From Takakia lepidozioides (Eukaryota > Plantae > Bryophyta): 64,000 nt of DNA. Below are positions 4,056 to 39,233 of the stretch, one piece after another. Where the stretch lies: contig CM060734.1 in the NCBI GenBank assembly GCA_030704615.1, forward strand, positions 37,200,001-37,264,000. The letters are read 5' to 3'. The translations under genes were made by a program, and so were the position numbers. The notes beneath the pieces are model-generated. The model searched no databases. It saw only the letters and a program-made list of their open reading frames with translations, and was not told where the DNA came from. Within the stretch, counting starts at the first letter, position 1, and every line of letters begins with the position of its first letter.

Positions 4056-4650
4056 CTACACTTCCTGTGCTGAAGATTGGAAAATCAACGTCATTCTCTG
4101 CAAATAAGTAGCCATGAGCTGTTCCTCAGGAACAAAGGTTCTTTTCTCAATGTTGAAGCTCAAGTCATCTACTTGAGTCTGAAGCCCTTCCACATCCTCT
4201 TGCAACTCAGCTATTCGACTATAGACATTGTCTATAATGGTTGTGGCAATGTTCTGCACCCGTAACCTGAGATCATTCATATCGTCTTGGGTGAGCTTCC
4301 TTGGTTTTTTCCCCTCCACTGACCCTTGTGTTAACCATTCTTGCAAAAGATGATTATCCACCAAGTCTTGTGTAACACCACAGAGATCCTGCTCCTCCTT
4401 GAGCCTGTATGTTTCCAACTGCTGTTGTAAAGTCTCCATGCGCTTCGCATGAGGCTCAGCCAGAGCTGCATAGGCAGCTGACAGATTATTGGCTTCTTTC
4501 CAGGCCCTTTCACTCACAGAAAGTTCATTCTCCCGTACTGTGATTGTTTGTTGCAACTCAAAGATGTACCGGTCTTTCTGGGCATCGACCTGGTGCAACT
4601 GCTGAATGGTATCCTCATTGCGACAGAGAGTATCCTTCATGTCAGCAATG
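4056..4650 (-). CDS. 5'-truncated coiled-coil ORF, probably retroelement-encoded
   Basis: Heptad-like Q/E/L-rich translation, colinear with the 3067-3963 ORF. Its apparent N-terminus comes from a PDF-exon fragment. Confidence 0.4.
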
Positions 4651-4659
4651 AGTTTCCTC

Positions 4660-4930
4660 TCATGATGACTTGCGTCTGCTTCCAACAGGCATTTACCCTC
4701 GATTGTTCCACCATTGACTGGGGCGGAAACGTATTCATTCCAGAGCTTCTCCTCGTCTCTATTATCTGTTTTCCGATACTTTCCTGTTGCCACATTGGTA
4801 GTGACATGTCAAAATCACTCCAAAACCACCATAGATCCACCAACGAGCTAACTTGCAGAATTCGACATGAAAATTTAGGGACGACTTTGATAACAGGAAA
4901 AAAAATAGGGTGAAATGTATTGAAGAACAC
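4660..4930 (-). pseudogene. Fragment of the PDF-motif exon and flanking introns of the PPR gene family
   Basis: Matches 29850-30080 and 30390-30540 (GKYRKTDNRDEEKLWNEY, then frameshifted into the QWW-NR segment), including intron sequence. Confidence 0.8.
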
Positions 4931-8942: not shown

Positions 8943-10179
8943 ATATTAAAAAATGAGAGGCATTATAATACTATGGTTAATAACCGAACCGGCTGATATT
9001 GGCAATTCCAATACTATGGTTGATAACCGGACCGGCTGGTATTGCCAAAGCAATACCCGTCCAATACCCGTATTATGGGCAAAAACAAGGATTATAACAT
9101 GGTATGGATAGGAAATTGGGCAGGTGCACATGATGCCAGGGGTGAGGGGTAAGAGGGTGCACATGTCATGTCCAGCCGGGCTATAAAACTAAAATCAATA
9201 ACTCTGCAACCAGGCTGTTGAGTTTGCATGTGGACAAGTGCTTCGGTGGAAAATAAGGTGATACCTGCTGCTGCAGAGACACTAGAAGAGAAACCGGCTT
9301 TTTCCACGGCTCTGCCATCTCACACCTGGCACATTCCACGGCTTTTATCACGGGTCTGTAGACTGAGCCAAGGTGTGGGTCTAAATATGCACTAACTGTG
9401 GGGTGTCTCACATGTGGTCCACACCCCAGGCAAGAACGGTGTGAAAACAGCCATGACCGTGGCAGGGGTTGGCTTAGTTTACATGGCATGTTACACACCT
9501 GTGTGAAATGGGACCATACAATTATTTCCACTGATTGTGGTGTATGGGTTTAGTTAGTACTCCGCTGCAAATGGAATAAATCATGAACTTCAGAAATCTG
9601 CCCTCGGAAAGACGAAGAGGTGGTCGTCACACTTTGCAATGTAAACCGAATGCAATGCAAGCTTAACAGTCTTCATATTATGATTGAAGGGAGTCAAATT
9701 AAGTGTGACCATATCAGTGCAGGGACATAAATATGAATCATTCAACATTGTAAAATGAAAACAGGGTAGAGCTAGTACATGGTACCTTTAAAACTTGTTG
9801 CAGAGTGCAAAAGGTTTAAAGATCAAAGTGCAAAAGGTTTAATTTTTTTTGCAAAAGTTGCTTGTAGGGTTTGCAAAAGGTTAATTTTTTTAAAAAGTTG
9901 CCCATCCCGGTAGCTGTGAACAGAGGGTTGGGACTTAGAGTAGCGAGCGGGAGGGAGGGCAAACATGGGAGGCCCGCAGTTGGAGCAACCTTCGCATCTG
10001 AATAGCAAGCAACCCGACAAACGCTAGGGTATGTGTGCGAGGACTAGGTGTCGGCTGAGAGCTCGCCGTTCTGGGGAGAGTCAGCTTGGTCTTAGGTCGA
10101 GGACAATGTGGTGAGGGCACCTTCTTCTTCGACCTATTTCAGCCTGTTTTGCGCTCTCATCAACCTCAGCCTTAAATTT

Positions 10180-13100
10180 GTAGCACGGAGCAGAGCTGGC
10201 ATGAGTTTTTAAAGATCCTTCACGATGGTGGAACAACCGCAATCGCAAGGTGTGGCTTTTTCTTAATGTACAATGTGAAGAAGTTTGTCCATCCTGCAAA
10301 TGTCCTGTTAGTACCGTGCTTTGGTATCCTTCCTGATGTTTACAAGGTTCTTGGCAGAGTCAGCTTGGTCTTAGCAGGCCGTGCTTCAATTTCTACCCGT
10401 TCAGCTGCACCGTGGTGGTTCTCATAGACCAATCAGACATTACCTGACTACAAACACAAGCAGCACACACAAGAGGTTCTCTTAGGTTCATGGTCAGTCA
10501 AATCCTCCATGGGTCATGACACAAGGTCGAGGACAATGTGGTGAGGGCACCTTCTTCTTTGACCTATTTCAGCCTGTTTTTCCCTCCCATCAGACTCGGT
10601 TGATAGAACTAGGCAGCGGTAACGGAGGTACCTGCTTCAATACATTTCAGCCTGTTTTCCTTGTTATCAGAGTTGTCCCTAATTTTCATGTTGAATTCTG
10701 CAAGTTAGCTCTTGGTGGATCTATGGTATTGGGGGTTTTGAAGTGATTTGACATGTTACTGCCTATGTGGCAACATGAAAGTATTGAAAACAGATAACAA
10801 AAACTAAGAGAAGCTCTGGAATGAAGGAGCAGGGATAGAGTGTGGGTTGAGATTCATCGAAGCGGGCCGGATTTCAAGCTCCAGATCACCTATGATTCCA
10901 TGTGGAAGGATAGCTACAAGAAACCTGCATGGGTAGATGGTCAATTGGAAGCCGCGGCAGCAACGGCACAAATGATCAAATCAGGCACCTCAACCATGAC
11001 CACAACTTCTGGAAGAGGATCAAGAGAGGGAGTCCACAGTGCCTGTTCTGGCACTTCTGGGCATGTCAAGATGCTTTGTGAGGTAGGCAGACTGAATGAG
11101 GCTCTACAGACTTTAAACCAATGAGGAATTTCAGCAGATTTAGATAAGTATGTCTGTCTCTTGCTTAAGTGCATCAAGAGGAAAGGTTTGGAAGCTGGAA
11201 AGCATGTGCACACTCACATTATGATCCAAAGTGGACTCACGCCAACTGTTTTTCTCCTCAACTCCCTTGTCAACCTGTATGTTAAGTGCGGGAGCATCAT
11301 GAATGCTCACCAAGTTTTCAACAGAATGCCTCAACGATCTTTGATCTCATGGAATACAATGCTGGAAGGATTTACCACGCGTGGGTGTTTGTGTTTGCAA
11401 AAGCGTGTGCAAGCCTGGGACCTCTGGAAAATGGGGGAAAGGGGGCACCTTCTTCAATAGCACAGCGGCTACAAGTGGGTAGATGGTCAATTGGAAACAG
11501 CGGCAACAGCACATTGATAGAACAAGGCACTAGCTAGGATCAATAGCTACAAGAAACTTGCATGGGTAGATGGTCAACTAAAGGCAACAGCTGCAATGTC
11601 ACAGTTGATAAAATCAAGCACCTCAACCAAGACCACAGCTTCTGGAAGAGGATCAAGAGAGGGAGTCCACAAGCCTCTTCTGGCACTTCTGGGCATGTGA
11701 AGATGCCTTGTGAGGCACGCAGACTGAAAGAGGCTCTACAGACTTTAATTTAAACCAAAGAGGCATTTCAGCAGATTCAGAAACGCATGTCTGTCTCTTG
11801 CATAAGTGCATCAAGGTGAAAGGCCTGGAAGTTGGAAAGCAGGTGCACACTCACATTATCCAAAGTGGATTCACGCCAAATGTTTTTCTCCTCCACACCC
11901 TTGTCAACATGTATGTTAAGTGCGGGAGTATCATGGATGCTCACCAAGTGTTCAACAGAATGCCTCAACGATCTTTGGTCACGTGGAATATCATGTTGGT
12001 AGGATTTACCAAGCATGGGTGTGGTAGGAATGCTTTGGAGACCTATGAGCAAATGATGGGGGAAGCGATTTAGCCCAACCACATCACGTTTGTAGCGTTT
12101 GCAGTGCGTGTGCAAGCCTGGCAGCCCTGGAAAAGGGCAAAGAGGTGCATGGCGACATCGTGAGAGCTGGAATTGTACCAGATGTGATCCTGAATACTGC
12201 CCTGGTGGACATGTATGCCAAATGTGGGTGCATCGAGGATGCAAAGGGAGTGTTCGACAATATGGCTGAACAAAATGTGGTGTCGTGGAGTGCGATGCTC
12301 GCAGGATATGCACAGTAGGGGTGCGGGATGGAGGCTTTGGAGACCTATGAGCAAATGATGGGGGAAGGGGTGAAGCCCAACCACATCACGTTTGTGTGCG
12401 TTTGCAGTGCGTGTGCAAGCCTGACAGCCTTGCAAAAGGGCATAGAGGTGCATGGCGACATCGTCAGAGCTAGAATCGTACCAGATGTGATCCTGAACAA
12501 TACCCTGGTGGACATGTATGCCAAATGTGGGAGCATCGAGCATGCAAAGGGAATGTTCGACAATATGGCTGAACGAGATGTGGTGTTGTGGAGTGCGATG
12601 CTCGCAGGATATGCACAGTAGGGGTGCGGGATGGAGGCTTTGGAGACCTATGAGCAAATGATGGGGGAAGGGGTGAAGCCCAACCACATCACGTTTGTGT
12701 GCGTTTGCAGTGCGTGTGCAAGCCTGACAGCGTTGCAAAAGGGCATAGAGGTGCATGGCGACATCGTCAGAGCTAGAATCGTACCAGATGTGATCCTGAA
12801 CAATACCCTGGTGGACATGTATGCCAAATGTGGGGGCATCGAGCATGCAAAGGGAGTGTTCGACAATATGGCTGAACGAGATGTGGTGTTGTGGAGTGCG
12901 ATGATTGCAGGATATGCACAGCAAGGGCGCGAGATAGAGGTTTTGGAGACCTATGAGCAAATGATCTGCGAAGGGGTGAAGCCCAACCATGTCACATTTG
13001 TGTGCGTTTGCAAGCCTGGCAGCCCTAGAAAAGGGCAAAGAGGTCCATGGTGACATTGTCAAAGCTGGAATTGTACCCAATGTCATTCTGAACTCTGCCC

Positions 13101-14710
13101 TGGTAGACATGTATGCCAAATGTGGGAGCATTGAGGATGCGAAGGGATTGTTCAACACTATGGCTGAAGGAGATTTGGTGTCGTGGAACACGATGCTTGC
13201 AGGGTATGCACAGCAGGGGCGCGAGATGGAGGCCTTGGAGACGCATGAGCAATTGATGGGGGAAGGGGTGAAGTGCAACCACATCACGTTTTGTGTGCGT
13301 TCACAATGGTTGTGCAAGCCTAGCAGCCCTGGAAAAGGGCAAAGAGGTGCATGGTGACATCGCCAAAGCTAGAATTGTACCAGATGTGATTCTGAACAAT
13401 ACCCTCGTGGACTTTTATGCCAAATGTGGGTCCATCGAGGATGCAAAGGCAGTGTTTGATAAGATGGCTGCACATTCACGGGATGGAGGCTTTGGATACC
13501 TATGAGCAAATGATGGGCAAAGGGCGACAGTTTGGAGGCTGTGATGGCTGCATATGTGTGGGGGAAAAGAAGCGAAGGGATAGAGTGTGGCCAGATTTCA
13601 GGCACAAGATTACTTATGATTCCCTGTGAACCAATAGCTACTAGCACCCTGCATGGGTAGATGGTCAACTGGAAGCTGTAGCAGCAACAACACAATAGAT
13701 AAATTCAGGCACTGCTAATGAAGGCACCTTCTTCAACACATTTCACCCTGTTTTTCCCTCTTATCAGAATCGGCCCTGAATTTTCATGTTGAATTCTGCA
13801 AGGTGTTGGTTGAGTAAACCTTTGATAGTTTGGAGTGACTGACTGATATTGCCAATGTGACAACAAGAAAGTATCCAGAAACAAGTAACAGAGACAAGGA
13901 GACCAGGAGCTGTGGAATGAATACTTTTCTCACCCCAGTCAATGGTGGGACAATCGAGGCAAAAGGTAAATGCTTGTTGGATTACAGAGAGTAGCAAATG
14001 CAATTGAGCATAGGAACTAGTGTGATAAGTTGAGTTGGGTGTTTCCTAGAACAATTCTAGGCTTTCATTGTCAGTTGCTAGCAGCACAGAAAGGGTGAAT
14101 GCATGATTTGTGCAGAGGCATGGATAGCTGAAGGAGCAGGGATAGAGTGTGGGTCCAGATTCATCTACGAGGGCCAGATTTCAAGCTCCACATTACCTGT
14201 GATTCCCTGTGGATCAATAGCTACCAGAAACCTGCATGGGTAGATGGTCAACTGGCAGCAGCGGCACAATTGATATAATCAGGCACTGCTAATGAAAGCA
14301 TCTTCTTCATTACATTTCCCTCTTATTAGAATCGGCCCTAACTTTCCATGTTGAATTCTGCAAGTTAGCTGGTTGAGTGAATCTAGTTTGGAGTGACTTT
14401 GACATGATACTGCCGATGTGACAACAGGAAAGCATCCAGAACTAGGTAACAAAGACGAGGACAAGCTGTGGAATGAATACTTTTCTGACCCCAGTCAATG
14501 GTGGGACAATCGAAGCAAGAAGGTGAATGCTTGTTGGATTATAGAGAGTAGCAGATGCAATTGAGCATAGGAACTAGTGTGATAAGTTGAGTTGGGTGTT
14601 TCCTAGAACAAATCTAGGTTGTCATCGTCAGCTGCTAGCAGCAAGGCAAGGATGTATGCTTGATTTGTGCAGAGGCATGGATAGCTGAAGGAGCAGGGAT
14701 ATAGTGTGGG
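10180..14710 (+). pseudogene. Scrambled pseudogene copy of the PDF-PPR gene (PDF exons, introns, PLS repeats; no E/DYW)
   Basis: High similarity to 27300-31140 in the opposite orientation. Stops at 11122, 12071, 12316 and 12619, frameshifts, a duplicated N-terminal block, and PDF exons re-appearing after the PPR tract. Confidence 0.93.
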
Positions 14711-15765
14711 TCCAAACTCAGGTGTTTCCGCCTTGGTAGGTTGCTCAGTGACCTTCCCTGATAGCTTTGGAGTATAGTGAGTGTCTCACAATGCAATGTT
14801 GGTTGGTGCATCTTATGCAGGAACTTAGAAAACAAACAAATGTCGTTTTTTGGAGCTTTAGGCTGAACCTCTGTGCTGGGCTGCATTGTGCAGCCTGGCC
14901 TCTGCCTCAGACTCAGACTCAGATCTTTGATCTCAGACTCAGACTCAGACTCTTTGATGTCAGACTGAAGTGTATTTGGGCACTGAAGCATTTATGTAAT
15001 TTTGAATTATCGTTGCATCTACTCATTCTATCTGTTGTTCTGGCCATGCTTAGTTAGTTCTTCATGTCATGAGCAGGTTATTGCCGTGATGCTTTGGAAT
15101 TGTGTTTAGGTGTCTTTAGATCGTGATACTGACCACAAGCAACCTACGGTGAACTGTGGTATCCTCCACATTTATGTGGAATGTCCTACAACGTAGGTCG
15201 TAGTATATTTCACACCCGCTATGGTTGTAGTGTGAAAAAGAAGGGGCATGAATCCCCTTCTGGGTGATTTCAATTGTACTCCTCTCCAGTTGAAGCAAAT
15301 CAAAAGGAAGGAACGTTATAGTGATCCGACCATCGTCACACGGCTGTGGGTTTCCCTCAGGTCGTTCGTGATCAGAGTTCATGCAATCCTCATCCACGCC
15401 GCAGCGGAAGAGAAGACATGGATGGGGAGTCTGGGTTCTTCCTTCTCTTGGTTCTACTTTTATACAGCAGCCTTGCCCTACTTGTACAGCACCAGCAGTG
15501 CTGCCGTGATGTCTTCAGTGATGCAACCAGCCCTATGTCAAAGTTGAATGCGACCCATGTGGGCAGCTCCCTTGAGCAGCAACACGTCGGAAGCCCCCTT
15601 TTGACAATGAGATCACGGATTTAGAGGGAGGCAGCTCAGATCTGCCATGAACTGCAAGCCTACTGGTGTTCTTCAGAGATCATGTTTTCTTCATCTTATC
15701 TCCCCAATTGGCCATCCCTCATTAACCCCTTTTACTGGGCAACTCTCTCCCTTCCCAAACCTTTT

Positions 15766-17645: not shown

Positions 17646-20600
17646 TCATGTATCTTTGTACCCCAAAAAGTCATAGGGTCCCTCCCATGGAGATGTCATG
17701 GAAGACCTCTTTCCAGGTCTCAACATCATTACCTTGCTGTTCTCCATCAACTTGCAGTAGCTATGCCCTGCTTGATGCCTCCTTGCATAATCCCTTGCCT
17801 GCTGACGCTGCCCTTTCTTCACACTTTTCCGCAGCTTAGTTTTCATCTATGTGAGGAGCTGGATTTTCTGTTGCATCATAAGTGTGACTTCTATAACAGA
17901 TCCATCAAAATTTACTGCTGCTGTAAGAAAATGCAATCTGTTGTCGACTCCTTGTGCTGCCAAGTTTTCACACATCTTGCAGTACAGTTGGTTGGTTTTC
18001 ACCTTCTCACTTCCCGGATCCACAAACAGCTCACTTCTTCTCTGATTTACTTCTGCTGGCAATACTGGCTTTACTTTGCTGGTTTGAACAGTACTGATGC
18101 GTGAGAGGTTATTGTAACACCTGGTGCTGCACAACCTTGTTTTCATACGCTGCTGATGGCTGCCCAATGGTGGGCTATTGTTGCAAACACATGTGATGCT
18201 TAAGCTCCCATGGAATCCTTCCATAATATTGACAGGTACCACCCTAGCATACATGTTAATGACGGTGTTGCCCAGCTTGTGATTTAGAAGAATTTCATCC
18301 CTCTTGATGTCATCATAGGCCTGCTCTCCCTCTCTAAGAGATGCAGTGCTGGTGTATACCTCGTAGATGGAAGTGATTCTGACATGGGTAGGCTTTATAT
18401 CCTCCCACACCATCTGCCCATTCATCTCCAGAACCTGAATTTTGCAAGCATGCTGGGCATTTCTCATAATCACCACATTTGGTAACATCCCATCTCGTTC
18501 AGCCATGTTGATGAGCACTCCCTTTGCATTCTTGATACCCCCCCACTTGGTATATATGCGAACAAAGGTAGTGCCCAAGATAATCCTTGGCACAACTCCA
18601 GCCTCAATGACATCAACATGGATTCCCTTGCCTTCACCCATGTTTGCCAGGCTTGCGCATGTATTGCATATACTAAGGAATGTCACTTGGTTGGGCTTTA
18701 CCTTTTTATTTCCAAAATCTGAAGACAGCTCATTACTTCCATATTGAGTTGCCGCTGCTGGTATAGCGCTGACTCCTTCAGATATGTCCACAGAGATTAC
18801 ACTGTAAAGGCAGCTTCCCAAACTTGCTCCCCTCTTGTGCTGGCGTTTTGGTGTGTATGCAAGTCCTTTCTCTGTCCATGTCTGCTTCCATCTTCCACCA
18901 AAGCCAGCCATTCCTTTACAACCTTGCTTCAGATTACTGAGCTGTATATACCAGATGTATTGGCAGCATAAAATTGTAATCAGGATGGCCTGTTCTGACC
19001 AGTTCTTCACCGTTTGCCATAGGCACCTGCAGCACATAATCGATGCCCCCCATCTCCACTGTTGTAATTGCTGATGCACGCCAGTGACGACCCTACAGCA
19101 CATAATCAATATCAAGATGGCCTGTTGCCTCCATGCCTTAACATCCCCCTTTTCCCCTTTCCCCCCCCTTTTTTTTTGTAATTATGTATACAACTTGTGA
19201 ACCGGAGGATGCTGTGGTTAATGAATGATTTCCTTGTGCTTTGCCTCCACCTTTGACACCATTTTTCCTTTGTTTTTGGCAGATTTGTTCCTTGCAGAAT
19301 CACCTCATCGTCATGCATCTTTTCTTTGTGACCCTCCTCTACATAATGCAAGTCTTTGCATGTCCACACTCTTGGCTTCCACACATGGTTTTCTGCCCCT
19401 TCGTATGCCCTAATGACTTCTCCACTCTTCATGTCATCATGTGCAAGCTTAGGTGTTCTCATGCATCGATCTTTCAGGTTATCCCTTCTCCTTTTTACCA
19501 CCTTTTCCATCACTGGAGCGAGTTGTACGCTCCCTCCCTTTAGACAAATTTCTTCTCCAATCTGCAGTGCCTCTCCATTGTATGAATCCTTCCACACCTG
19601 ATACTCCATGTTCCCTTCATCTCCCCCCAACATTTGTCAACGTTTCATCATCCAAAGAAGTTTCAACGTCCTCTTCCTTGTCCTGAATTGGGGTTCCTGG
19701 TGTCCCCATGAACATGTTATTGACTGATGATGTGCATATATCCAAGAGCAGCTGGAGCCATTGCAGCTCTGCCTGAAGATGCTTGTTATCACTACGGAGC
19801 TCATCCCAGTACACTTATCTGGCCTTACTCCGTTCTTGGGTGGATTTCTCGAGTGCCAACTGTAACTGTTGAATTTCCATGACCAAGTTCTCTACCTGGA
19901 TTTTAGTTTCTCTCTGTAGTGCTAGGGCAGCTACAACGCTATCTCGTGCACCCTTTACCTCTAATTTCTCCTCCTGTGCAGTCGCAAGTTTGGTGTGCAG
20001 CCCACTTAGTTCCTTTCCCGTATCCAGAGATGCTCCTCCATTCTCCAACTGTATATGAGTTGAGCTACTTTGTGGCTCACTGTTGCCCCCGTCATCATGT
20101 TGCAGCTTACCTTTGTGAGAACATCTGGAAATCTGAGCCCTGTCGTACTCTTCATTCCCCAACACACTCAGTCCTCTCTTGGAAACACTAATCTTTGGTG
20201 ACATGGTAGCATCATGCCCAAACTTTCCAAGCATGTCTTGATCAAGGTGTGCATCTTTCTCTAGATCCTGTCTAGTTTGAGCAAGCATCGTACACTCTTC
20301 CTCCACCCATTCCATCAGGTCTGTCCAAGATTCGTTGTGATCTTCCTCTACCATGACACTCACTTCACCGGTTGTACCACTATTGCTTGGGGAGTTGGTG
20401 GTGCTATGCCCAGACTCCCCAAGTATGTCTTGCCCTACATGTGTCCTTGTATAAGACCTTGTAAACTGCACATGAACTTGCAATCTAGGTGTACACTCTT
20501 CATTGACACCTGATTGATACTCTGTTGAACAAAAGATGTCTTCCACGATCTCTTTTTCCACATCACAAAACACATTCACAACATTTGTGCCAAGAGAGCT

Positions 20601-20954
20601 TACCCATTCGCACTCCATCCTTCTGCTGCTCCTCGACTCCCATTGTTCCAACATTTCACAGCATGAATCTTGCATTCCACATGTTCCCACTTGCAGCCCC
20701 AGCTGGTGATTCCTTTCGCTTCGGATCTGATTCTGTCTTGATGGACATGCAATGCAACACTCTACTTGCTGCCTTGTGTTGTTCAAGTTGAGAACTCGAG
20801 GAAGCCTTGTAGGGACTTTGCTGGTTTGGTTCTTCTCCCTAAAGCACCTCCGTGACATGGTTTTGTGATCTGGTATAGGTTTATGATCAGTAGAACTCAC
20901 AGGTGTGAACCTGTTGTGATTATCCTTCTCAATCAGAGACAATTTCTCTTCCAT
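17646..20954 (-). pseudogene. Long chimeric, mostly open reading frame inside E1 (coiled-coil + diverged PPR motifs + integrase tail)
   Basis: ORFs starting at 20954, 19814, 19115 and 17846 share one frame, with one shifted segment 19633-19112. 18240-18710 translates as L-S-P-L PPR motifs (KPNQVTFLSICNTCASLANMGEGKGIHVDVIEAG...). Confidence 0.6.
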
Positions 20955-21788
20955 CCCTGTGGCAGACTCTTCTACATTTGTATCTATCCCATCAAACTAG
21001 CGTAGGTGCAACTTTCTAAGACAGACTGTCCTGCCAACACCACTGCTCGCAGCAGCTGCTAAGAGTTGCCCGTCATCTTCCTCTTCGTCTTCCTCAACCC
21101 GCATTTCTAGGTTAAACATCTGCGATGAAAACATTCATCCCAAGGATGAAAATACGCATGGTCATGACTTAGCCACTTTTTATCCCGGCAGAGCATTAGC
21201 ATAGCGTGCCCATGAAATTACCTATATGCAGGGATAAATCCCTCCCGCAATTGGTACCAGGGCACTCCCTTTGCAGAATCTAAACAAAAATTTAATGTTA
21301 CTCCCCTTGCATTCACACCACATGGTCTTCTCCACAGTTATGTGGAATGACCTACAATATAGGCAGTAAAATACTCCACACCCACACCAAGAGTTGCTCC
21401 AAAATACGCCACGTGTTGCCTTGACAAAAATACACGTGGTGCCCATACCGTTGCCCAGATGTCGTCAAGCCATGGTGACAGGCTGTCGCATAATTTTCCC
21501 GTAGGTGTGGACAAGTCCACACCCTTTGTACATCTAGGATCCACGTGGCGGTGTTCGCCAAAGCACACATCGCCCATGGAAAAAGCCATTCACCCCGTGA
21601 AAAAAGCCACCTCTGGATTCAGCCACCCGTGGACTTTTCCACAGGGCCACCCGAGAGCCAGGCCATCCACGGGGTGTCCGAAAGCACTAGTCGTTTCTTA
21701 CACCCACGACAGGTGTGGATTGCGGCTGATTCCACAGCAAAAAGTGTGGAAAAAGCCGTGGAAAAAGCCGGTTTCTCTTCTAGTGAGA

Positions 21789-22219: not shown

Positions 22220-23370
22220 CCTCTTGTTCCTCATCTCTCTTACCTGATTCTGGATACTTTGGCAGTATCATGTCAAAGTCACTCCAACTATCAAAGGTTC
22301 ACCCAACCAGCTAACTTGCAGAATTCAACATGAAAATTTAGGGCCGGTTCTGATAAGAGGGAACCCACACTCCATCCCTGCTCCTTCAGCTATCCATGCC
22401 TCTGCACAAATCATGCATACATCCTTGCCTTGCTGCTAGCAACATACAATGGTAGCCTAGAATTCTTCCAGCAAACACCCAAACCATACTTATCATACTA
22501 GTTCCTATGCTGAGTTGCATCTGCTTCCAACAGGCATTCACCTTTTTGTCTCCATTGTCCCACAATTGACTGGCTTCGGAGAAGTGTTCATTCCAAAGCT
22601 TCTCCATGTTTGATAGCAACACATAAGTCGCGGCATCCTGTTCATCCTACTTGAGGATAGATGTTGCCACACATTTAGCCATCTCCACATTGCCATGGAT
22701 TCTGCAGGCACCAAGCAAGGCCTTCCAGACCACAACATCTGGATTGATTGGCATTTTATTAACCAGGTCCACTGCCTCATCCAGTTGTCCCGCACGTCCA
22801 AGAAGGTCCACCATGCAGCCAAAGTGCTTTACTGTTAGAGTGATACCATGAACTTGACTCAGGGAATCGAAGTAGTGTCTTCCTTCATCCAGTAGGCCAG
22901 TGTGGTTGCATGCAGAGAGAACACATATAAAGGCTGTCCACCTTCAAGCCGTTCTTGTGCATTCCTTCAAATAGTTGCAGGACCTCCCTATGACAACATA
23001 CTGGGCATATCCTGCGATCATCGCATTCCACATCTGGCATACATGTCCACGAGGGTATTGTTCAGAACCACATCTGGTACAATTCCAGCTTTGGCGATGC
23101 AACCATGCCATTTTCCAGGGCTGCCAGGCTTGCATACGCACTGCAAATGCACACAAACGTGATGAGGTCAGGCTTCACCACTTCCCCCATCATTTGTTCA
23201 TAGGTCTCCAAAGCCTCCATCCCGTGCCCCTGCTGTGCATACCCTGCAAGCATCGCGTTCCACGACACCACATCTCGTTCAGCCACAGTGTAGAAAACTC
23301 CCTTCGCATCCTCGATTCACCCACATTTGGCATATGTCCACCAGGGCAGTGTTTAGGATGAATCTGGTGC
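22220..23370 (-). pseudogene. Deleted PPR pseudogene (P/L/S, L2-S2-E fragments) joined to PDF-exon fragments
   Basis: Matches 26920-27700 with deletions. After YVLLSN the sequence jumps to EKLWNEHFSEASQLWDNGDKK. Confidence 0.9.
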
Positions 23371-23588
23371 AATAAGTTAGACAACCACCAGTCTTTGATG
23401 TTCGCCTTATTCTACACAAGGTTGCAATGCTCCATGGATATGGCGGAAAGGTGAACGATGGCGGAAAACATTCATTATGCTTTTAAAACTAGCATTCTGT
23501 TGAGGTGGTGACCCCCTGTCCCTAGGCATCAATGTTTTGCTTCCTGCTATGTTGGAGCTCTGATTTTTGTAGTCCACAGCTGGCGCTC

Positions 23589-26437: not shown

Positions 26438-29400
26438 TCACCAGTAATCCCCACAAGAACAAATCCCATCTTCAAAGTGGTGAAAGCGGTTAGCGTCCCG
26501 TACAACAATTGCTCGGCCAACAATCTTTGAGATGAATTTGGTGGAGGTGTGGCAATCACCACACACTCGAAGATTCTTGATGAGACGGAGAGGCGTCCTG
26601 GGGGTCGTGCTGATCAGCCCAAAACCAATGGCCAGCTTCTCACTGTGGTGGCAAAGAGAAAATTCCTTTTCCTCCTCCCCCACATCATGCAATACAAAGC
26701 GCGTGTCAGGCACATACCCCGCCTCCTTCATCTGCCCAGACAATCTTCTCAGCTCAGCATGGATTTCCTTAATTCTGGGATGCAACTTGTCATCTACAAC
26801 GAAGGTGTGCACCCTGTTGCCAACCTCAATGCAGCAGCAACCTGGCTCCTTTCTAACCCCTTTGACCTTCATCATTTTTCTCACCTTTGCAGTATCATCC
26901 CACCTGCCAGCTGCAGCATAGATGTTTGAGAGCAACACATAAGTCGCGGCATCCTGTTCATCCCACGTGAGGATAGATGTTGCTGCTCGTTCAGCCATCT
27001 CCACATTGCCATGGATTCTGCAAGCACCAAGCAAGGCCCTCCACACCATAGCATCTGGATTGATGGGCATTTTATTAATCAGGTCCACTGCCTCATCCAG
27101 TTGTCCCGCACGTCCAAGAAGGTCCACCATGCAGCCAAAATGCTTTACTGTCGGAGTGACACCATGATCTTGACTCAGGGAATCAAAGTAGCGTCTTCCT
27201 TCATTCAGTAGGCCAGCGTGGCTGCATGCAGAGAGAACACATATAAAGGTGATACTGTCCGGCTTCAAGCTGTTCTTTTGCATTCCTTCAAATAGTTGCA
27301 TGACCTCCCTATGACAACCATGCTGTGCATATCCTGCGATCATCGCGTTCCACGACACCACATTTCGTTCAACCATATTGTCGAACACTCCCTTTGCATC
27401 CTCGATGCTCCCACATTTTGCATACATGTCCACCAGGGCAGTGTTCAGGATCACATCTGGTACAATTCCAGCTCTGACGATGTCGCCATGCGCCTCTATG
27501 CCCTTTTCCAGGGCTGCCAAGCTTGCACACGCACTGCAAACGCACACAAACGTGATGTGGTTGGGCTTCACCCCTTCCCCCATCATTTGCTCATAGGTCT
27601 CCAAAGCCTCCATCCCGCGCCCCTGCTGTGCATATCCTGCAAGCATTGCGTTCCACGACACCACATCTCGTTCAGCCATATTGTCGAACACTCCCTTTGC
27701 ATCCTTGATGCTCCCACATTTTGCATACATGTCCACGAGGGCAGTGTTCAGGATCACATCTGGTACAATTCCAGCTCTGACGATGTCGCCATGCACCTCT
27801 TTGCCCTTTTCCAGGGCTGCCAGGCTTGCACACGCGCTGCAAACGCACACAAACGTGATTTGGTCGGGCTTCACCCCTTCGCACATCATTTGCTCATACG
27901 TCTCCAAAGCCTCCATTCCGCGCCCCTGCTGTGCATAGCCTGCAAGCATCGCGTTCCACGATACCACATTTCGTTCAGCCATACTGTCGAACACTCCCTT
28001 TGCATCCTCGATGCTCCCACATTTGGCATACATGTCCACCAGGGCAGTGTTCAGGATGACATTTGGTACAATTCCAGCTCTGATGATGTCGCCATGCGCC
28101 TCTTTGCCCTTTTCCAGGGCTGCCAGGCTTGCACATGCATTGCAAACGCACACAAACGTGATGTGGTTGGGCTTCACCCCTTCCCCCATCATTTGCTCAT
28201 AGGTCTCCAAAGCCTCCATCCCGCACCCCTGCTGTGCATATCCTGCAAGCATCGCACTCCACGACACCACATTTCGTTCAGCCATACTGTCGAACACTCC
28301 CTTTGCATCCTGGATGCTCCCACATTTGGCATACATGTCCACGAGGGCAGTGTTCAAGATCACGTCTGGTACAATTCCAGCTCTGACGATGTCGCCATGC
28401 ACCTCTTTGCCCTTATCCAGGGCTGCCATGCTTGCACACGCACTGCAAACGGACACAAACGTGATGTGGTCGGGCTTCACCCCTTCCCCCATCATTTGCT
28501 CATATGTCTGCAAAGCCTCCATCCCGCGCCCCTGCTGCGCATACCCTGCAAGCATCGCGTTCCACGACACCACATTTCGTTCAGCCATACTGTCGAACAC
28601 TCCCTTTGCATCCTCGATGCTCCCACATTTTGCATACATGTCCACCAGGGCAGTGTTCAGGATGACATTTGGTACAATTCCAGCTCTGACGATGTCGCCA
28701 TGCGCCCCTTTGCCCTTTTCCAAGGCTGCCAGGCTTGCACATGCATTGCAAACGCACACAAACGTGATGTGGTTGGGCTTCACCCCTTCCCCCATCATTT
28801 GCTCATAGGTCTCCAAAGCCTCCATCCCGCGCCCCTGCTGTGCATATCCTGCAAGCATCGCACTCCACGACACCACATTTCGTTCAGCCATATTGTCGAA
28901 CACTCCCTTTGCATCCTCGATGCTCCCACATTTGGCATACATGTCCACCAGGGCAGTGTTCAGGATCACATCTGGTACAATTCCAGCTCTGACGATGTCG
29001 CCATGCACCTCTTTGCCCTTATCCAGGGCTGCCAGGCTTGCACACGCACTGCAAACGGACACAAACGTGATGGGGTCGGGCTTCACCCCTTCCCCCATCA
29101 TTTGCTCATACGTCTCCAAAGCATTCCTACCACACCCATGCTTGGTAAATCCTGCCAACATTATATTCCACGTGAACAAAGATCGTTGATGCATTCTGTT
29201 GAACACTTGGTGAGCATCCATGATGCTCCCGCACTTAACATACATGTTGACAAGGGTGTTGAGGAGAAAAACATTTGGCGTGAATCCACTTTGGATCATG
29301 TGAGTGTGCACCTGCTTTCCAGCTTCCAGGCCTTTCACCTTGATGCACATATGCAAGAGACAGACATACGTTTCTGAATCTGCTGAAATGCCTCCTTGGT

Positions 29401-29665
29401 TTAAAGTCTGTAGAGCCTCTTTCAGTCTGCCTGCCTCACAAAGCATCTTCACATGCCCAGAAGTGCCAGAAGAGGCATTGTGGTCTCCCTCTCTTGATCC
29501 TCTTCCAGAAGCTGTGGTCATGGTTGAGGTGCCTGATTTTATCAACCGTGCCGCTGCAGCTGCTGCCTTTAGTTGACCATCTACCCATGCAGGTTTCTTG
29601 TAGCTATTGATCCACAGGGAATCATAGGTAATCTTGTGCTTGAAATCTGGCCCTCTTGGATGAAT
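26438..29665 (-). CDS. PLS-class PPR protein with E1-E2-DYW cytidine deaminase domain (organellar C-to-U RNA editing factor); large last exon
   Basis: Uninterrupted frame with L-S-P triplets, P2-L2-S2, PG box PGCCCIEV, HSEKLA, CGDC and terminal DYW. The frame extends upstream of the called TTG to an AG acceptor at 29667/29666 and encodes IHPRGPDFKHKITYDSLWINSYKKPAWV. Confidence 0.97.
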   Translation of the reverse strand: MHPRGPDFKHKITYDSLWINSYKKPAWVDGQLKAAAAAARLIKSGTSTMTTASGRGSREGDHNASSGTSGHVKMLCEAGRLKEALQTLNQGGISADSETYVCLLHMCIKVKGLEAGKQVHTHMIQSGFTPNVFLLNTLVNMYVKCGSIMDAHQVFNRMHQRSLFTWNIMLAGFTKHGCGRNALETYEQMMGEGVKPDPITFVSVCSACASLAALDKGKEVHGDIVRAGIVPDVILNTALVDMYAKCGSIEDAKGVFDNMAERNVVSWSAMLAGYAQQGRGMEALETYEQMMGEGVKPNHITFVCVCNACASLAALEKGKGAHGDIVRAGIVPNVILNTALVDMYAKCGSIEDAKGVFDSMAERNVVSWNAMLAGYAQQGRGMEALQTYEQMMGEGVKPDHITFVSVCSACASMAALDKGKEVHGDIVRAGIVPDVILNTALVDMYAKCGSIQDAKGVFDSMAERNVVSWSAMLAGYAQQGCGMEALETYEQMMGEGVKPNHITFVCVCNACASLAALEKGKEAHGDIIRAGIVPNVILNTALVDMYAKCGSIEDAKGVFDSMAERNVVSWNAMLAGYAQQGRGMEALETYEQMMCEGVKPDQITFVCVCSACASLAALEKGKEVHGDIVRAGIVPDVILNTALVDMYAKCGSIKDAKGVFDNMAERDVVSWNAMLAGYAQQGRGMEALETYEQMMGEGVKPNHITFVCVCSACASLAALEKGIEAHGDIVRAGIVPDVILNTALVDMYAKCGSIEDAKGVFDNMVERNVVSWNAMIAGYAQHGCHREVMQLFEGMQKNSLKPDSITFICVLSACSHAGLLNEGRRYFDSLSQDHGVTPTVKHFGCMVDLLGRAGQLDEAVDLINKMPINPDAMVWRALLGACRIHGNVEMAERAATSILTWDEQDAATYVLLSNIYAAAGRWDDTAKVRKMMKVKGVRKEPGCCCIEVGNRVHTFVVDDKLHPRIKEIHAELRRLSGQMKEAGYVPDTRFVLHDVGEEEKEFSLCHHSEKLAIGFGLISTTPRTPLRLIKNLRVCGDCHTSTKFISKIVGRAIVVRDANRFHHFEDGICSCGDYW
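27370..29130 (-). repeat. Near-identical 303-nt tandem repeats (101-aa L-S-P units, about six copies)
   Basis: Directly visible periodicity in DNA and protein. Confidence 0.97.
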
Positions 29666-29853
29666 CTGTACCCACAGTCTACCCCTGCTCCTTCAGCTAT
29701 CCATGTTTTTGCACAAATCATGTGTTCATCCTTGTCTTGCTGCTAGCAGCTGACAATGACAGCCTAGATTGTTCTAGGAAACACTCAACTTAGCTTATCA
29801 CACTAGTTCCTATGCTGAATTCTGCTACTCTCTGTAATCTAACAGGCATTAAC

Positions 29854-30520
29854 CTTTTGGCCTCGGTTGTCCCACCATTGACTGGGGTCAGAAAAGTATG
29901 CATTCCACAGCTTCTCCTCCTCTCTGTTACCTGTTTTTGGATACTTTCCTGTTCTCACATTGGCAGTATCATGTCAAAGTCACTCCAAACTAGATTCACT
30001 CAACCAGCTAACTTGCAGAATTCAACATGGAAATTTAGGGCCGGTTCTGATAAGAGGGAAAAACAGGGTGAAATGTGTTGAAGAAGGTGCCTTCATGAGC
30101 AGTGCCTGATTTTATCAATTGTGCCGCTGCTGCTGCGGCTTCCAGTTGACCATCTACCCATGCAGGTTTCTCGTAGCTATCCTTCCACATGGAATCATCG
30201 GTAATCTTGTGCTTGAAATCTGGCCCTCTTGAATGAATCTGGACCCACACTCCATCCCTGCTCCTTCAGCTATCCATGCCTCTGCACAAATCATGCATGC
30301 ATCCTTGCCTTGCTGCTAGCAACTGACAATGACAGCCTAGATTTGTTCCAGCAATCACCCCAACCATACTTATCACACTAGTTCCTATGCTGACTTGCGT
30401 CTGCTTCCAAAAGGCATTCACCTTTTTGTCTCCATTGTCCCACCATTGATTGGGGTCGGAAAACTGTTCATTCCAAAGCTTCTCGTCATCTCTGTTATCT
30501 GATTCTGGATACTTTCCTGC
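29854..30520 (-). CDS. Upstream exons encoding OSB-type PDF motifs, predicted to splice in frame to the PPR-DYW exon
   Basis: Exons ~30516-30422, 30238-30091 and 29948-29854. Phase-0 GT-AG introns 30421-30239 and 29853-29666 rejoin WWDNxxxK|IHxRGPDFKHKITxDSxW...PAWV. Intron 30090-29949 would be GC-AG (GT in the paralogous copy at 10628). Confidence 0.72.
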
Positions 30521-30739
30521 TGCCACATCGGCACTAACTTGTCAAAGTCATTCCCCATAAATACTTTTTTTTATTGTACGTGGTTTTTTAGTCGGGGGAG
30601 CCTATAAGCATTCCAAACCACCCCAGATCCACTGCAACATATGGCAATTGAAAGGCTACAACTTGGATGCAGACACCATATTCAATATGCAAATTCAGGG
30701 CCGAGTCTGATGAGAGCGCAAAACAGGCTGAAATAGGTC

Positions 30740-31150
30740 GAAGAAGAAGGTGCCCTCACCACACTGTCCTTGACCTTGTGTCACGACCCATGGAGGATTT
30801 GACCGACCATCTACCCAAAAGGACCTCTTGTGTGTGCTGCTTGTGTCTGTAGTCAGGTAATGTCGGATTGGTCTGTGAGAACCACCACGGTGCAGCTGAG
30901 CAGGCAGAGATTGAAACACGGCCTGCTAAGACCAAGCTGACTCTCCCAAGAACCTTGTAAACATCAAGAAGAATACCAAATCATGGTACTAACAGGAGCC
31001 AAGCGCCCACATTTGCAGGATGGACAAACTTCTTCACATCGTACATTAAGAAAAAGCCACACCTTGCGATTGCGGTTGCAATTGCGGTTGTCCCACCATC
31101 GTGAAGGATCTTTAAAAAACTCATGCCAGCTCTGCTCCGTGCTCCAAGGT
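30740..31150 (-). pseudogene. A third, more diverged PDF motif (EQSWHEFFKDPSRWWDNRN..RK | TNPTLPDYRHK..RSFWVDGRSNPPWV) with a frameshift
   Basis: Same intron position after WWDN..K. The 10-nt CAGCACACAC segment shifts the frame between PDYRHK and KRSFWV. Confidence 0.7.
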
Positions 31151-31364
31151 AGAGGTTCGTGGTCGAAAATCCGACTGCATCAACACTTTGACGAGGTCCT
31201 TTACTGAGGGGTGCAAGTGAGCTTTCAACAACATTCATGCAAGTTGTCTTGGGCTCCATTGGGCTCTACACGATGAGGAACAACGAACTCCAAACTCTGC
31301 TCAAGAAACATGTGCTTTTACCGAACTTTCAACAAGGATATATCTGTGCTCTTCCAAGGTGGCA

Positions 31365-31666
31365 GAAGCAGAGACGAGGAGAAGCTGTGGAATGAGTACT
31401 TCTTCGACCCCAGTCAATGGTGGGACAATCGACCTACAAAGGTGAATGCCCCGTTGGAGTACAGAGAGTAGCAGATGCAAATATTGAGCATATGGATTAT
31501 TAGTGTGATAAGCTGAGTTGGGGTGTTTCGCAGAAGAAATCTAGGTTGTCATTGTCAGCTGCTAGCAGCAAGGCAAGGATGTATGCATGATTTGTGCGGA
31601 GGCACGAATAGCTGAAGGAGAAGGGATGGAGTGTGGGTCCAGATTCATCCAAAAGGGCCAGATTTC
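31365..31666 (+). pseudogene. Inverted PDF exon-intron-exon fragment
   Basis: RDEEKLWNEYFFDPSQWWDNRPTK|GT...AG|IHPKGPDF on the plus strand. Confidence 0.85.
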
Positions 31667-31667
31667 C

Positions 31668-31727
31668 AGGATTTGAACCCAGTATCGGTCGCAATCAACT
31701 GAGCAGTAGCCAATTGAGCTACAGAAG
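31668..31727 (-). mobile_element. tRNA-like SINE head
   Basis: The minus strand has A-box TAGCTCAATTGG and B-box GGTTCAAATCC but no complete cloverleaf. Confidence 0.55.
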
Positions 31728-31789
31728 TTGAGTTCCACCTTTGATTTTTTATTTCTAGCAACCAATTATTTTTTTGAATCAACAAAAGA

Positions 31790-32400: not shown

Positions 32401-33332
32401 GTGTAGGGTAAGAACCGGGCGGAGTATAAGGGGCTTAAATTGGTGAACCCCCGTGCCCCGGTTCTTTACTGAGCATGAACAACGTTGGCCCTGCGCCCCG
32501 TAGCGCACTGGGCCGACTCTCGCCTACGTGCCACTCTGGCGCTAGTGAAGAGGTGAGCCGGCTACATGCCGCAGTGAACTACCTTCTGAAGCGCTTTGCA
32601 ACCTACCGAGAGCACTTTCTTGATTTCAATTGCGTTCAAAGATTTCACAGCTACCTATCGCCTGAAAAAACAAGGTACCTACCTGATTTTTACAAAGTAG
32701 GGGACGACTCGAGTTGGGCCTGCGTGCGCTACGTACGGTAGCGCCCCGCGTGGCGCTTAGCTATTGGGTGTATCATGTTCCTAACTGCCCTCGACCCTGC
32801 GGGTCTCGGAGCGCAGGTAGGAACATGATACCCCTAGTAGCAGTGCCCCTTGTGGAGCTCCAGATTCCATGGCGGTGCATATGCTATCCTGTCAGTCCCT
32901 TGGATGAAAAGCATGGGGTTGTTGGACATTAATGATAACAGGGACTATCTTTGGTTATATGATTGTCCTACGTTAACAGTCACGAGATAAGCCAACCTGG
33001 AAACTGAGCTGGCTGATGTGAGGTCTTGTAATCTGCATGTCCAATATGAGTGCTGCGTCTGGAACTCCAGATTAGCCTCTCCCGATTATTTAAATGAAGA
33101 GATCATCAGGCTTAGGCAGGATGTTTTTGGTGTACAAACTGGTGTAGTGGTTGTGTGAAGGACGCTGGATGAAACTGTGTTGATGTTTTGCTGCGTGCAA
33201 CGATTGGCTTAGATTGTATGTGTGCTCTGCAATAGATCCTTCCCTGTCAGCTTGACAAAGTTCTATAGCTTACAATCCCTTGTGCATGACTTAACTCGCA
33301 GAGACGAGAGCATATCCTTGTGTCGGGGTTCT

Positions 33333-35679: not shown

Positions 35680-37626
35680 GTGTCCACCAACTTCAAGTTG
35701 CTCCATACTGAGGTGTTGAAAACCAAGAATAGAGAGCGTATTCACCTCTTGATGACACAATGTCATATTGGTCACTTATCTTTTCAATGTGTCATAGACA
35801 CGGGCTGTATAGTATCTGCCATTCCTTTGCATGTGGTTCAAGTTCTGGGTTTGAAAATGTCTCCAACCAAGGGTATTGAGGTCACCATAGCTGATGGTAC
35901 CAGCTATGAACCCCTTGGTTTAGTTAGTGTGCCAGTAAGGATTAGTCGCAAAGTTGTCACCATCATAGGGATTGTAACCATGGGCGAACAACTACTTTTG
36001 GGGTTGGATTGGATGACTGAAGCCATGGCTTCCATTGATCTCTGTACTAATGTCATGACCTTGAAGGATGGTGAAGGTGGCAGCTGCAAAGTCAATTTGA
36101 ATCAGATCCCTATCCTGGCAGGCAGTGGGACCAGACATCTTGCTTGCATGAAGGCTGTCTCACGTGAAGTCAGGCAACGGGCTGGAGACACATACAACTG
36201 GACTCGCTTCTTTGGTTTTCAGAGCAGCCCAACGATGCTTTTCCAGTGGCACATACCTGCTGCTGGCTACAAGACTGGTGCATGCCTGTCGAGGGTGACA
36301 CCCTTCTTCTTAGAGCCCCTGCTAATGTTCAATTACCTGCTATGTCTCAAGTCATTGTGTCTACAGGCCTTGCCTTCATCTGCCCACAAGGCAAATATCT
36401 TGAGATTGAGGGTTGGAAACGCCTGTCATTACAAAAACATTGCTTGGTTGCATCAGGACTTTTGGATAGGGGTTTTAGGGGTCATGTTCGCATTTTGATT
36501 GCCAATCCAGAGCGCATGCTTGTCACCATCAAGAAGGGTCAAGTGCTGGCTAGGCTCACTGCTGTGCCCATTAGTGACATATCCTCGGTGGAGCCAGCTT
36601 TACATCTACGAGATATTGGTCTGGAAGATGATCCTCTGGATGGTCTGATTGCTATGACCAGTTTAGCTGCAGCCCCAACAAGTCACAGCCTCACTACTGA
36701 GCAAGAAGCTCACTTTCAACAGGTATTGGCTGAGATTAAGGTGGGTGAACTGACTGATTCTCAGCAAGCTCAATTACATCTGCTGCTCAAAAGAAACTTG
36801 GACATATTTAGCAAAGGTTCACATGACCTGGGCTGCACAAAGATACTTAAGCATGAAATTATTACTAAAGGAAAGCCAATCAAACAATATGCTTACAGAG
36901 AATATGTCCGTGAAAGAGTAGTTATTCAAGAAGAAATTAGGAAGATGTTGGATTCCGGAGTGATAAAACCTTATGTTTCCCCTTGGACTAGTCCCATTGT
37001 GCTTGTGGGGAAGAAAGATGGCACCACACGCTTCTGTGTGGACTTTTGAAGGTTGAATGCAATGACTAAAAAGGATGTCCATCCCCTGCCACGTATCAAA
37101 TGGGGCAACTATCTTTTCTTCCCTTGATTTAGCCTCTGGGTTCTGGCAAGTTCCACTAACGGAGGACTCCAAAGAAAAGACTGCATTTACCTGCAGATAT
37201 GGTCTGTTTCAGTACGAAACCATGCCGTTTGGGCTTTGTAATGCCACTGCTACCTTCCAAAGGCTCATGGACGTGGTCCTTAGTAATTTAAGATGGTAAT
37301 GTGCTCTTGTATATGTAGATGACATCAATATTTATTCCAGCAGCTTTGCATCTCACCTTTTGGACCTGCAAAGAGTAATGAGCAGGTTATGAAGTGCTGG
37401 ACTTAAAGTTAAGGCAAAGAAATGTGATTTTTGTAGCTGGAGTTACGCTTTTTGGGACACGTTATTTGTGGGGATGGCATCAAACCTGACTTAACCAAAG
37501 TCCAGGCAGTTTGGGATTTTCCTATCCCAAAGGACAAACATTGTGTAAGAGCATTCTTAGGCCTTGCATCTTATTATAGAAGGTTCATCCTTCATTTTGC
37601 TAAGCTAGCTGGTCCCTTGTTTTACT
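35680..37626 (+). pseudogene. pol 5' part: aspartic protease, dUTPase-like domain, reverse transcriptase
   Basis: CVIDTGC...LLLGLDWM; STGLAFICPQG...GLLDRGFRGHVRILIAN...IKKGQVLARL; [44 protein letters not shown]. Confidence 0.93.
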
Positions 37627-38507: not shown

Positions 38508-39233
38508 CTATCCCAAGCAGTGTGGACACAACCAATCTCCGTCAGGAACCTTCTCAAGAGGTGGTGTCAAGCATCCCATATGCCAACCCCTTGAGCATCG
38601 ATCACACACCAGCATGGTGGCTGCCCCTTTGGCAGACCCACAGAGCATGTACCTCAAACCTGCAGGTACCACTGCCAAGTTTGGGTCAACTCTGCGATCG
38701 ACATTGGGAAGGTGACATGGCGCACAATTACGCACATGGTCTTTCCAAGTCATGCCATCCCGACCCTCCAAGATCAGGACCCCTGAGGGCAACACCTCTC
38801 GAACCCTCAGAATAACACGCCCTGCAGTAACATCCAGAGTCGTAGGAGCAGTCTGCTGCAAATAAACATAGTCACCAGGGCTAAACCTCCGAACCCCAGG
38901 ACGATATCCTCCACCACGTATAGTGGCATACCTCAACGTATCACGGTGCTGTGCAATGGCAATGTTCTCAAAAGCCATGGGCATGACTTTCTTGAACAAC
39001 TCTGCACGCTGATCACATGCACGTACCCACACGTCCGGATCGTCAAGGTTAAGGACTTGAGCAGTGTCCCTACGAATGGCTGCAGGCAAATCCGGCTCTC
39101 GGCCAAAGAGAAGTAAATATGGTGAGAAGGAGGCAAGTGATGTTTGTTTGCTGAACATGTAGCCCATGGCTAACCAAGGAACCTGAAGATCCCAATCTCC
39201 TAGGTGTCCCTTCTGCAATCCATACTTGCGCAA
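38508..39233 (-). pseudogene. Integrase C-terminal half fused to a PHD finger
   Basis: DWDLQVPWLAMGY...SPYLLLFGREP...FSPGDYVYL, then YMLC...MLVCDRCSRGWHMGCLTPPLEKVPDGDWLCPHC (C4HC3 pattern, first Cys replaced by Tyr). Confidence 0.9.

Follow-up and report, generated by a model that had tools for sequence, protein, structure and literature searches.

Why should a gene for an organellar RNA-editing factor be preceded, on the same strand, by exons that encode a motif of single-stranded DNA (ssDNA)-binding proteins? This question is raised by a locus in a 64,000-nucleotide stretch of the genome of Takakia lepidozioides (Bryophyta; GenBank assembly GCA_030704615.1, contig CM060734.1, forward-strand positions 37,200,001 to 37,264,000), referred to below, in its whole length, as the window. 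The locus carries a pentatricopeptide repeat (PPR) array of the PLS class that ends in E, E+ and DYW domains and that lies downstream of copies of the PDF motif of the OSB proteins. The analysis demonstrates homology, architecture, gene structure and purifying selection on the PPR part, and it is very likely that the locus is a member of an ancient family of PDF-PPR-E-DYW editing factors that is undescribed in the literature searched, with the first half of the PDF motif joined to the remainder by the splice 29854|29665. The layout of the family appears to comprise one to three PDF motifs between an N-terminal presequence and the PLS-class PPR array, and a conserved phase-0 intron divides the coding sequence of each PDF, the roughly 50-residue ssDNA-binding module of the OSB proteins, into two exons.

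The catalytic and RNA-reading part of the locus is contained in one exon, with the following components (positions are those of the window).

26438..29665, minus strand: terminal exon and open reading frame (ORF), from the ORF list, Pfam, TRF and BLASTP
29665-29582, minus strand: second half of PDF unit A, within the terminal exon
Between the PDF second half and the PPR array, minus strand: linker, within the terminal exon
About 29455-27026, minus strand: PLS-class PPR array, including six P-L-S blocks of 303 nt
27013-26825, minus strand: E motif
26812-26738, minus strand: E+ motif
26719-26441, minus strand: DYW deaminase domain
26440-26438, minus strand: stop codon of the PPR-DYW ORF

The ORF listed at 26438..29545 (minus strand) was found, base by base, to continue open upstream as far as the AG acceptor at 29666/29665, so that the fusion is indeed hidden by the ORF list, which stops at 29545, as the initial annotation had pointed out. 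When the 1075-residue translation from 29665 to 26441 was used as the Pfam query, it was matched by several PPR families with E values down to 1e-123 (PPR_2, 8e-123; PPR, 5e-101; and others) and, toward the C-terminus, by E_motif (1.2e-21), Eplus (1.3e-5) and DYW_deaminase (2.8e-43), and direct reading of the sequence found the catalytic signatures HSE and CGDCH and the terminal CSCGDYW all intact. The protein has the tandem P, L and S repeats and the E, E+ and DYW domains with HxE and CxxCH that characterize a PLS-class PPR-DYW editing factor. TRF detected a repeat with a period of 303 at 27321-29122 (93% matches), corresponding to six regular P-L-S blocks of 101 residues, among which the ratio of nonsynonymous to synonymous substitution rates (dN/dS) averages 0.34 in pairwise comparison; the block pattern and this ratio together point to a recent internal expansion of the RNA-reading array. 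The differences between the six near-identical 101-residue blocks (27026-29455, minus strand) lie mostly at a few recurring positions, such as S/N in ..VCSAC/..VCNAC and D/N in VPD/VPN. Because 1075 codons have stayed open and dN/dS is 0.34 amid the debris that surrounds the locus, we argue that the PPR-DYW part has been under purifying selection. The first in-frame ATG of the ORF is at 29521, about 27 residues ahead of the first PPR motif.

The first 28 codons of the terminal exon, reading IHPRGPDFKHKITYDSLWINSYKKPAWV, constitute the second half of a PDF motif, and the corresponding first half is found upstream in a separate exon. Two further units of the same kind follow in the upstream direction, and the three are designated A, B and C.

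29854..29948, minus strand: unit A exon 1, 95 nt, entered in phase 1, encoding KYPKTGNREEEKLWNAYFSDPSQWWDNRGQK
29666..29853, minus strand: intron within unit A, 188 nt, GT..AG, phase 0
30422..30516, minus strand: unit B exon 1, 95 nt, encoding KYPESDNRDDEKLWNEQFSDPNQWWDNGDKK
30239..30421, minus strand: intron within unit B, 183 nt, GT..AG
30035..30238, minus strand: unit B exon 2, second motif half intact
31063..31137, minus strand: unit C exon 1, encoding EQSWHEFFKDPSRWWDNRNCNRNRK
30873-31062, minus strand: intron of unit C, 190 nt
30760..30872, minus strand: unit C exon 2, TNPTLPDYRHKQHTQE, a one-base frameshift near 30824, then SFWVDGRSNPPWVVTQGQGQC

In unit A, exon 1 is bordered by acag|GAAAG and CAAAAG|gttaat, its coding end being ...EEKLWNAYFSDPSQWWDNRGQK followed by the splice border AAG|GTTAAT, and exon 2 begins at 29665 (tacag|ATT). 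The splice 29854|29665 with GT..AG borders would restore the PDF motif in frame with the PPR-DYW exon, and the spliced peptides are exactly those that the initial annotation had proposed. The acceptor of exon 1 (cag|GA AAG) resembles that of Diphasiastrum (cag|GC AAA). Unit A keeps its splice sites and every conserved PDF residue, and together with the PPR-DYW exon it is structurally intact. Base-by-base inspection also bore out the description of one intact (B) and one frameshifted (C) upstream motif with the same intron position; in A, B and C alike, the intron follows a K located five residues ahead of P-D-F/Y. Of the two other junctions proposed at the outset, 30422/30238 corresponds to a GT..AG intron of 183 nt, whereas 30091/29948 has a correct acceptor and a donor that would be GC instead of GT.

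The identity of the motif was assessed with profiles, since Pfam has no model that matches the PDF pieces in the window ORFs scanned. A profile of the second half only (A3), built from the copies in the window and scored with HMMER against 1.84 billion representative proteins, retrieved 185 proteins at E<=1e-3, including proteins with the Pfam SSB domain that carry C-terminal copies of the motif, among them a Drosera protein named 'OSB1, mitochondrial-like' and a Ginkgo protein. Many full-length matches carry W..F..P..WWD exactly 24 residues upstream of P-D-F, which is the spacing of the proposed splice product. Word-indexed searches with the PDF second half returned nothing (at 591-1881 aa or at 165-525 aa), a blank for which we hold the word index responsible, given the 185 proteins that HMMER retrieved afterwards in its full scan. 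The assignment to the OSB PDF, already made in the initial annotation, was put on an independent footing by a hidden Markov model (HMM) of 54 positions derived solely from OSB proteins (12 PDF motifs from 7 proteins with the SSB domain): spliced unit A scored 84.4 bits and spliced unit B 67.3 bits, both gap-free over positions 1-54 of 54, compared with 32.0 and 45.7 bits for the single exons of unit A and 8.7 bits for the best of 200 shuffles. Judging from these scores, the resemblance to the OSB PDF exceeds what chance would give and reflects homology. An AlphaFold2 model based on 58 motif instances predicts the PDF motif to be a compact domain of a helix, three short strands and a helix (pLDDT 92.9), with the invariant residues W, P, W, D, R, P, D and F, described as aromatic and basic; a Foldseek search of this model against the PDB gave no match among solved structures. 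In AtOSB1, the PDF motif has been reported to suffice for ssDNA binding (PMC6963530), and OSB1 and OSB2 have been reported to prefer ssDNA over double-stranded DNA and RNA (PMC4166229). No SSB-like OB-fold was detected in the whole window by tblastn with six SSB-like domains of OSB proteins (best E=0.3), PF00436 had no match in the window ORFs scanned, and the PDFs lie N-terminal of a PPR-DYW protein; the locus is therefore not an OSB gene.

Fusions of the same kind were found in other plants. Six proteins (P0001, P0023, P0102, P0103, P0144 and P0110) have an N-terminal PDF and PPR domains, with E or DYW in some of them, and the sources of PDF-PPR proteins are the lycophyte Diphasiastrum complanatum (several loci, each with many annotated isoforms), the mosses Sphagnum fallax, S. 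jensenii, S. tenellum and S. troendelagicum, and the fern Adiantum capillus-veneris. A search with the whole PPR protein gave complete N-terminal PDFs in 27 of the best 120 homologs, many of them also with PF14432, and these 120 include three proteins of the liverwort Calypogeia fissa, two of which have a complete PDF. PDF+PPR+DYW architectures, for which the initial annotation had suggested a profile search across plants, are thus seen in Diphasiastrum, Sphagnum and Calypogeia, and PDF+PPR in Adiantum. In addition, a Logan contig of 4755 nt contains a single intron-free ORF of 1371 residues with three uninterrupted PDFs and PPRs, and has the appearance of a spliced transcript; the literature searched contains no mention of SRR4210093, from which the best PDF-PPR contig derives.

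When the annotated proteins were mapped back onto their own genomic loci, the intron was found at the same position in Sphagnum (...WFDHRLEK|VNARYPDFKHK), in Diphasiastrum (...SDNRFTK|KNSKYPDFKHK) and in the Drosera OSB1-like gene (...WWDNRTTK|RNPRGPDFKHK) as in the window (...WWDNRGQK|IHPRGPDFKHK). In Sphagnum, Diphasiastrum and the Drosera OSB1-like gene alike, entry into the first-half exon is in phase 1 and falls in a Gly codon, which agrees with the acceptor at 29948. Both in Sphagnum and in the window, one exon holds the PDF second half and the entire PPR array, and because these two share one exon, the fusion is independent of any joining of gene models. With Diphasiastrum P0312, BLASTP gives one continuous match that extends from PDFKHK across the linker and on into the PPR array (E=2e-92). 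The locus has the features that unite the PDF-PPR(-DYW) proteins, namely a PDF directly N-terminal of the PLS array with a collinear linker, the phase-0 intron ...K|xxxxxPDF and the phase-1 first-half exon. As judged from these comparisons, the PDF-PPR architecture is real biology and not a local accident, recurring in four non-seed lineages (liverwort, moss, lycophyte and fern).

The best identities in the PPR part (47-57%) are to proteins of Cryptomeria, Ginkgo and Diphasiastrum, and the C-terminus is nearest to Ginkgo (69%); the PDF architecture nevertheless points to non-seed plants. The closest relatives in the linker are Ginkgo P0272, P0250 and P0310 (..ATMTAS..VRMLCEQGRLNEAL), which have short N-termini (MRIGKPLWNRKKK...) and no PDF, owing either to loss of the PDF in the Ginkgo lineage or to upstream exons overlooked in annotation. 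PDF motifs were also seen in proteins of other kinds (among P0137, P0043, P0002 and P0004): in Coptis, a gene model that includes a kinesin motor; in Striga, one called ICR2-like; in Welwitschia, a transcript that has no domain besides its three PDFs; and in Kingdonia, a protein containing 12 PDF stretches. The occurrence in the kinesin, ICR2-like and similar models reflects either a promiscuous module or, in some cases, merged gene models.

Several observations weigh against the view that the locus in its present state is an intact member of this family. No in-frame ATG is present in exon 1 of units A, B and C, and a homology search with the N-termini of relatives found no presequence exon, repeating the failure of the initial annotation to locate a start codon and a transit peptide. 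Unit C is frameshifted, so that splicing from C to A or from C to B yields a premature stop, and unit B has ATGAAG (AT) where unit C has the canonical phase-1 GT donor G|GTGAGG. Conservation of the PDF exons within the window does not exceed that of the intron (0.81 for exon 1 and 0.87 for the intron; for exon 2, about 0.85-0.92 in the parts that align, or 0.64 when pooled, a value lowered by broken copies), and a comparison of units A and B, based on few sites, gives a ratio of nonsynonymous to synonymous differences (pN/pS) of 0.62. Finally, no PDF is annotated in the nearest C-terminal relatives, those of Ginkgo.

The damaged units allow some further description. Exon 2 of unit C is 113 nt long, though 3n+1 is required, and terminates at the intact phase-1 donor G|GTGAGG. 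The frameshift is also present in a paralog at about 10.4 kb in the window, and being common to both, it is therefore older than the duplication. In unit B, the frame of exon 2 runs on into intron-like sequence and meets a stop at 30037-30035; a phase-1 GT donor does exist at 30151|30150 (GATG|GTCAAC), and nothing supports its use. The B-type units (unit B and copies at 13.7 and 14.3 kb) carry ATGAAG in place of the unit C donor (30035-30130 vs 30740-30770), and their sequence past GGCACC shows homology with the intron that follows unit C; by this comparison, they have the look of recombination products in which an A-type exon 2 was joined to a C-type intron. At the 5' end, no N-terminal organelle targeting peptide following a start codon was found at the locus, and an exon farther upstream is conceivable. 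One candidate start, the ATG at 31259 with a phase-1 donor behind it (CTCA|GTAAAG) that could join 30516 or 29948, was discarded, being not conserved in the paralog and showing no obvious transit peptide. Look-ups of exact products (the protein from ATG 29521, P0144 and another window ORF) gave no match.

The window, which is repeat-rich and of about 46% GC, contains four further pieces of the same family.

10068..14720, plus strand: degenerate inverted paralog of the PDF-PPR locus (self-BLAST, 84-91% DNA identity)
22228..23373, minus strand: chimeric fragment, a PPR block and part of an E motif joined directly to PDF exon 1 and intron
4650-4930: lone PDF unit fragment
31369..31669, plus strand: inverted partial PDF unit D, exon 2 cut after IHPKGPDF by a tRNA-like stretch

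The paralog consists, in this order, of a C-type unit, an A-type second half, a broken PPR array without E or DYW, and two further PDF units, and at about 10% divergence it shows repeated frame changes and stops in tblastn, whereas the main copy has none. In the chimeric fragment, the PPR/E part is equivalent to 26922-27353 and the PDF exon 1 with its intron to 30243-30484, and the whole looks like the outcome of a deletion or an unequal crossover between tandem family members. The tRNA-like stretch at about 31640-31760 (GTAGCTCAATTGG...GGTTCAAATCC, minus strand), which truncates unit D inside exon 2, may be the remnant of a short interspersed nuclear element; ARAGORN and Rfam made no call in the window, this stretch included.

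As for the remainder, long minus-strand ORFs lie between two direct repeats of 327 bp (17161-17486 and 20997-21323) that are 98.5% identical; one of these ORFs (17847-19115) holds a decayed PLS block (KKVKPNQVTFLSICNTCASL...) beyond recognition by Pfam, and the region 17161-21323 may be an element resembling a long terminal repeat retrotransposon that carries a PPR relic. An ORF of the retroelement gag aspartyl-protease type, a PHD-finger ORF and dispersed repeats of 95-96% identity (35680-36498, plus strand; 38508-39233, minus strand; 32851-33332 / 43858-44337) were also noted, all of them ordinary background for a repeat-rich plant genome.

It is against this setting that other explanations have to be weighed. 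The PDF-like exons and the PPR gene might adjoin by chance, for instance through capture by a mobile element, no functional fusion having ever existed. The PDF-unit fragments scattered in the window (4650-4930, 22228-22605 and 31369-31669) and the presence of PDFs in kinesin or ICR2-like gene models, perhaps merged, could be read in this sense, but the same order, intron position and linker recur in liverwort, moss, lycophyte and fern genes and in the intron-free contig, and the second motif half shares its exon with the PPR array, so that we find chance adjacency hardly credible. It might also be supposed that expression starts at ATG 29521 and is confined to the PPR-DYW part, so that the PDF exons are relics that serve no function today. 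Starting at the first in-frame ATG of the ORF would give a protein comparable with the Ginkgo proteins that have the same linker (..TMTAS..VRMLCEQGRL..) without a PDF. Editing factors need an organelle presequence, however, for which the approximately 27 residues before the first PPR leave no space; the homologs all have a presequence and a PDF upstream of the same linker, and the splice sites and conserved PDF residues of unit A have all been retained. We judge a start at 29521 unlikely.

More weight attaches to the possibility that the whole locus is an unprocessed, 5'-damaged pseudogene of a PDF-PPR-DYW gene, giving no targeted protein, in which the long ORF survives for no other reason than that the damage is recent. 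The dead copies in the cluster, the frameshift of unit C and the lost donor of unit B, the inverted partial unit with the tRNA-like insertion directly upstream, the missing ATG and presequence, and PDF exons without excess conservation over introns would all be accommodated by it. A decaying gene would be less easily reconciled with 1075 open codons and intact catalytic residues, with the many stops and frame changes in a paralog only about 10% diverged against none in the main copy, or with the dN/dS of 0.34 among the internal blocks, and we regard the pseudogene as a possible account that falls clearly below an even chance. The locus certainly descends from a PDF-PPR-DYW gene; that this very copy still makes the full PDF-PPR-DYW protein is somewhat doubtful, its likelihood being, in our estimate, a little short of even.

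Taking the locus as a member of a PDF-PPR-E-DYW family, a division of labor between its parts may be proposed. A PLS array binds a specific RNA sequence, and DYW deaminates the cytidine located just downstream. By analogy with other editing factors, the PPR array of the locus would read the RNA target and its DYW domain would deaminate C to U, and the PDF module would add sequence-independent binding to single-stranded nucleic acid. The most likely role of the module would be to keep the factor near the nucleoid or transcribing DNA, although it might do no more than add non-specific RNA affinity on the 5' side of the target. Tethering to nucleoid ssDNA or R-loops through the PDF is plausible in the light of the published work on OSB PDF motifs, whereas nothing in any of the results supports DNA deamination, which the initial annotation had also raised. 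Extending the proposal further, the PDF-PPR-DYW proteins might be an ancient class of editing factors physically coupled to organellar ssDNA (transcription bubbles, R-loops and replication intermediates), so that editing in bryophytes, lycophytes and ferns would be co-transcriptional at the nucleoid and, in the extreme version, DYW would reach ssDNA too; we offer this as a speculation that is improbable as it stands.

In plant organellar RNA editing, both site recognition and catalysis fall to PPR-DYW proteins, whose recruitment to substrates is poorly understood, especially where the helper proteins of flowering plants are absent. The PDF is the one motif of organellar OSB proteins known to bind ssDNA autonomously, and its conserved fusion with editing factors is a concrete and testable link between editing and the nucleoid; the fusion also presents the PDF motif as a mobile module that occurs beyond the OSB proteins. 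It is the family, present in public proteomes only under 'hypothetical' or plain 'PPR' names, that is of greater interest than a copy that is possibly decaying. Full-text searches of an incomplete library found no literature linking PDF and PPR, so a prior mention elsewhere is possible, and PPR goes unmentioned in a 2026 survey of how OSB proteins and the PDF evolved.

The locus is worth comparing with the known systems to which its parts belong. The OSB proteins (Arabidopsis OSB1-4, of which OSB2 is also known as pTAC9) have the same PDF motif with the same invariant W/P/W/D/R/P/D/F, the Drosera OSB1-like gene has the same phase-0 intron inside the motif, and PDF units A and B most resemble a terminal PDF, that of an OSB-type protein of environmental origin (64%). 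In OSB proteins, however, the PDFs are C-terminal of an OB-fold, whereas at the locus they are N-terminal of a PPR-DYW protein that has no OB-fold. The 'hypothetical' PDF-PPR proteins (O6H91_01G051500, 09G020300, 01G119900 and others in Diphasiastrum, BDL97_10G099700 in Sphagnum fallax, those of Calypogeia fissa, and GOP47_0023879 in Adiantum) share with the locus the architecture, the intron position, the phase pattern and the linker at an identity of 43-57%, but their models have an ATG and a presequence, neither of which is seen at the locus. The PLS-class PPR-E-DYW factors, such as Funaria PPR77 (P0236) and the homologs in Ginkgo, Cryptomeria and Diphasiastrum, have the same PLS, E, E+ and DYW components with HSE and CGDCH at an identity of 45-57%. 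From these, the locus is distinguished by its N-terminal PDF module, for which the literature searched on this class gave no precedent, and by its six blocks of 101 residues, which, matching at about 93% of DNA positions, stem from a very recent amplification.

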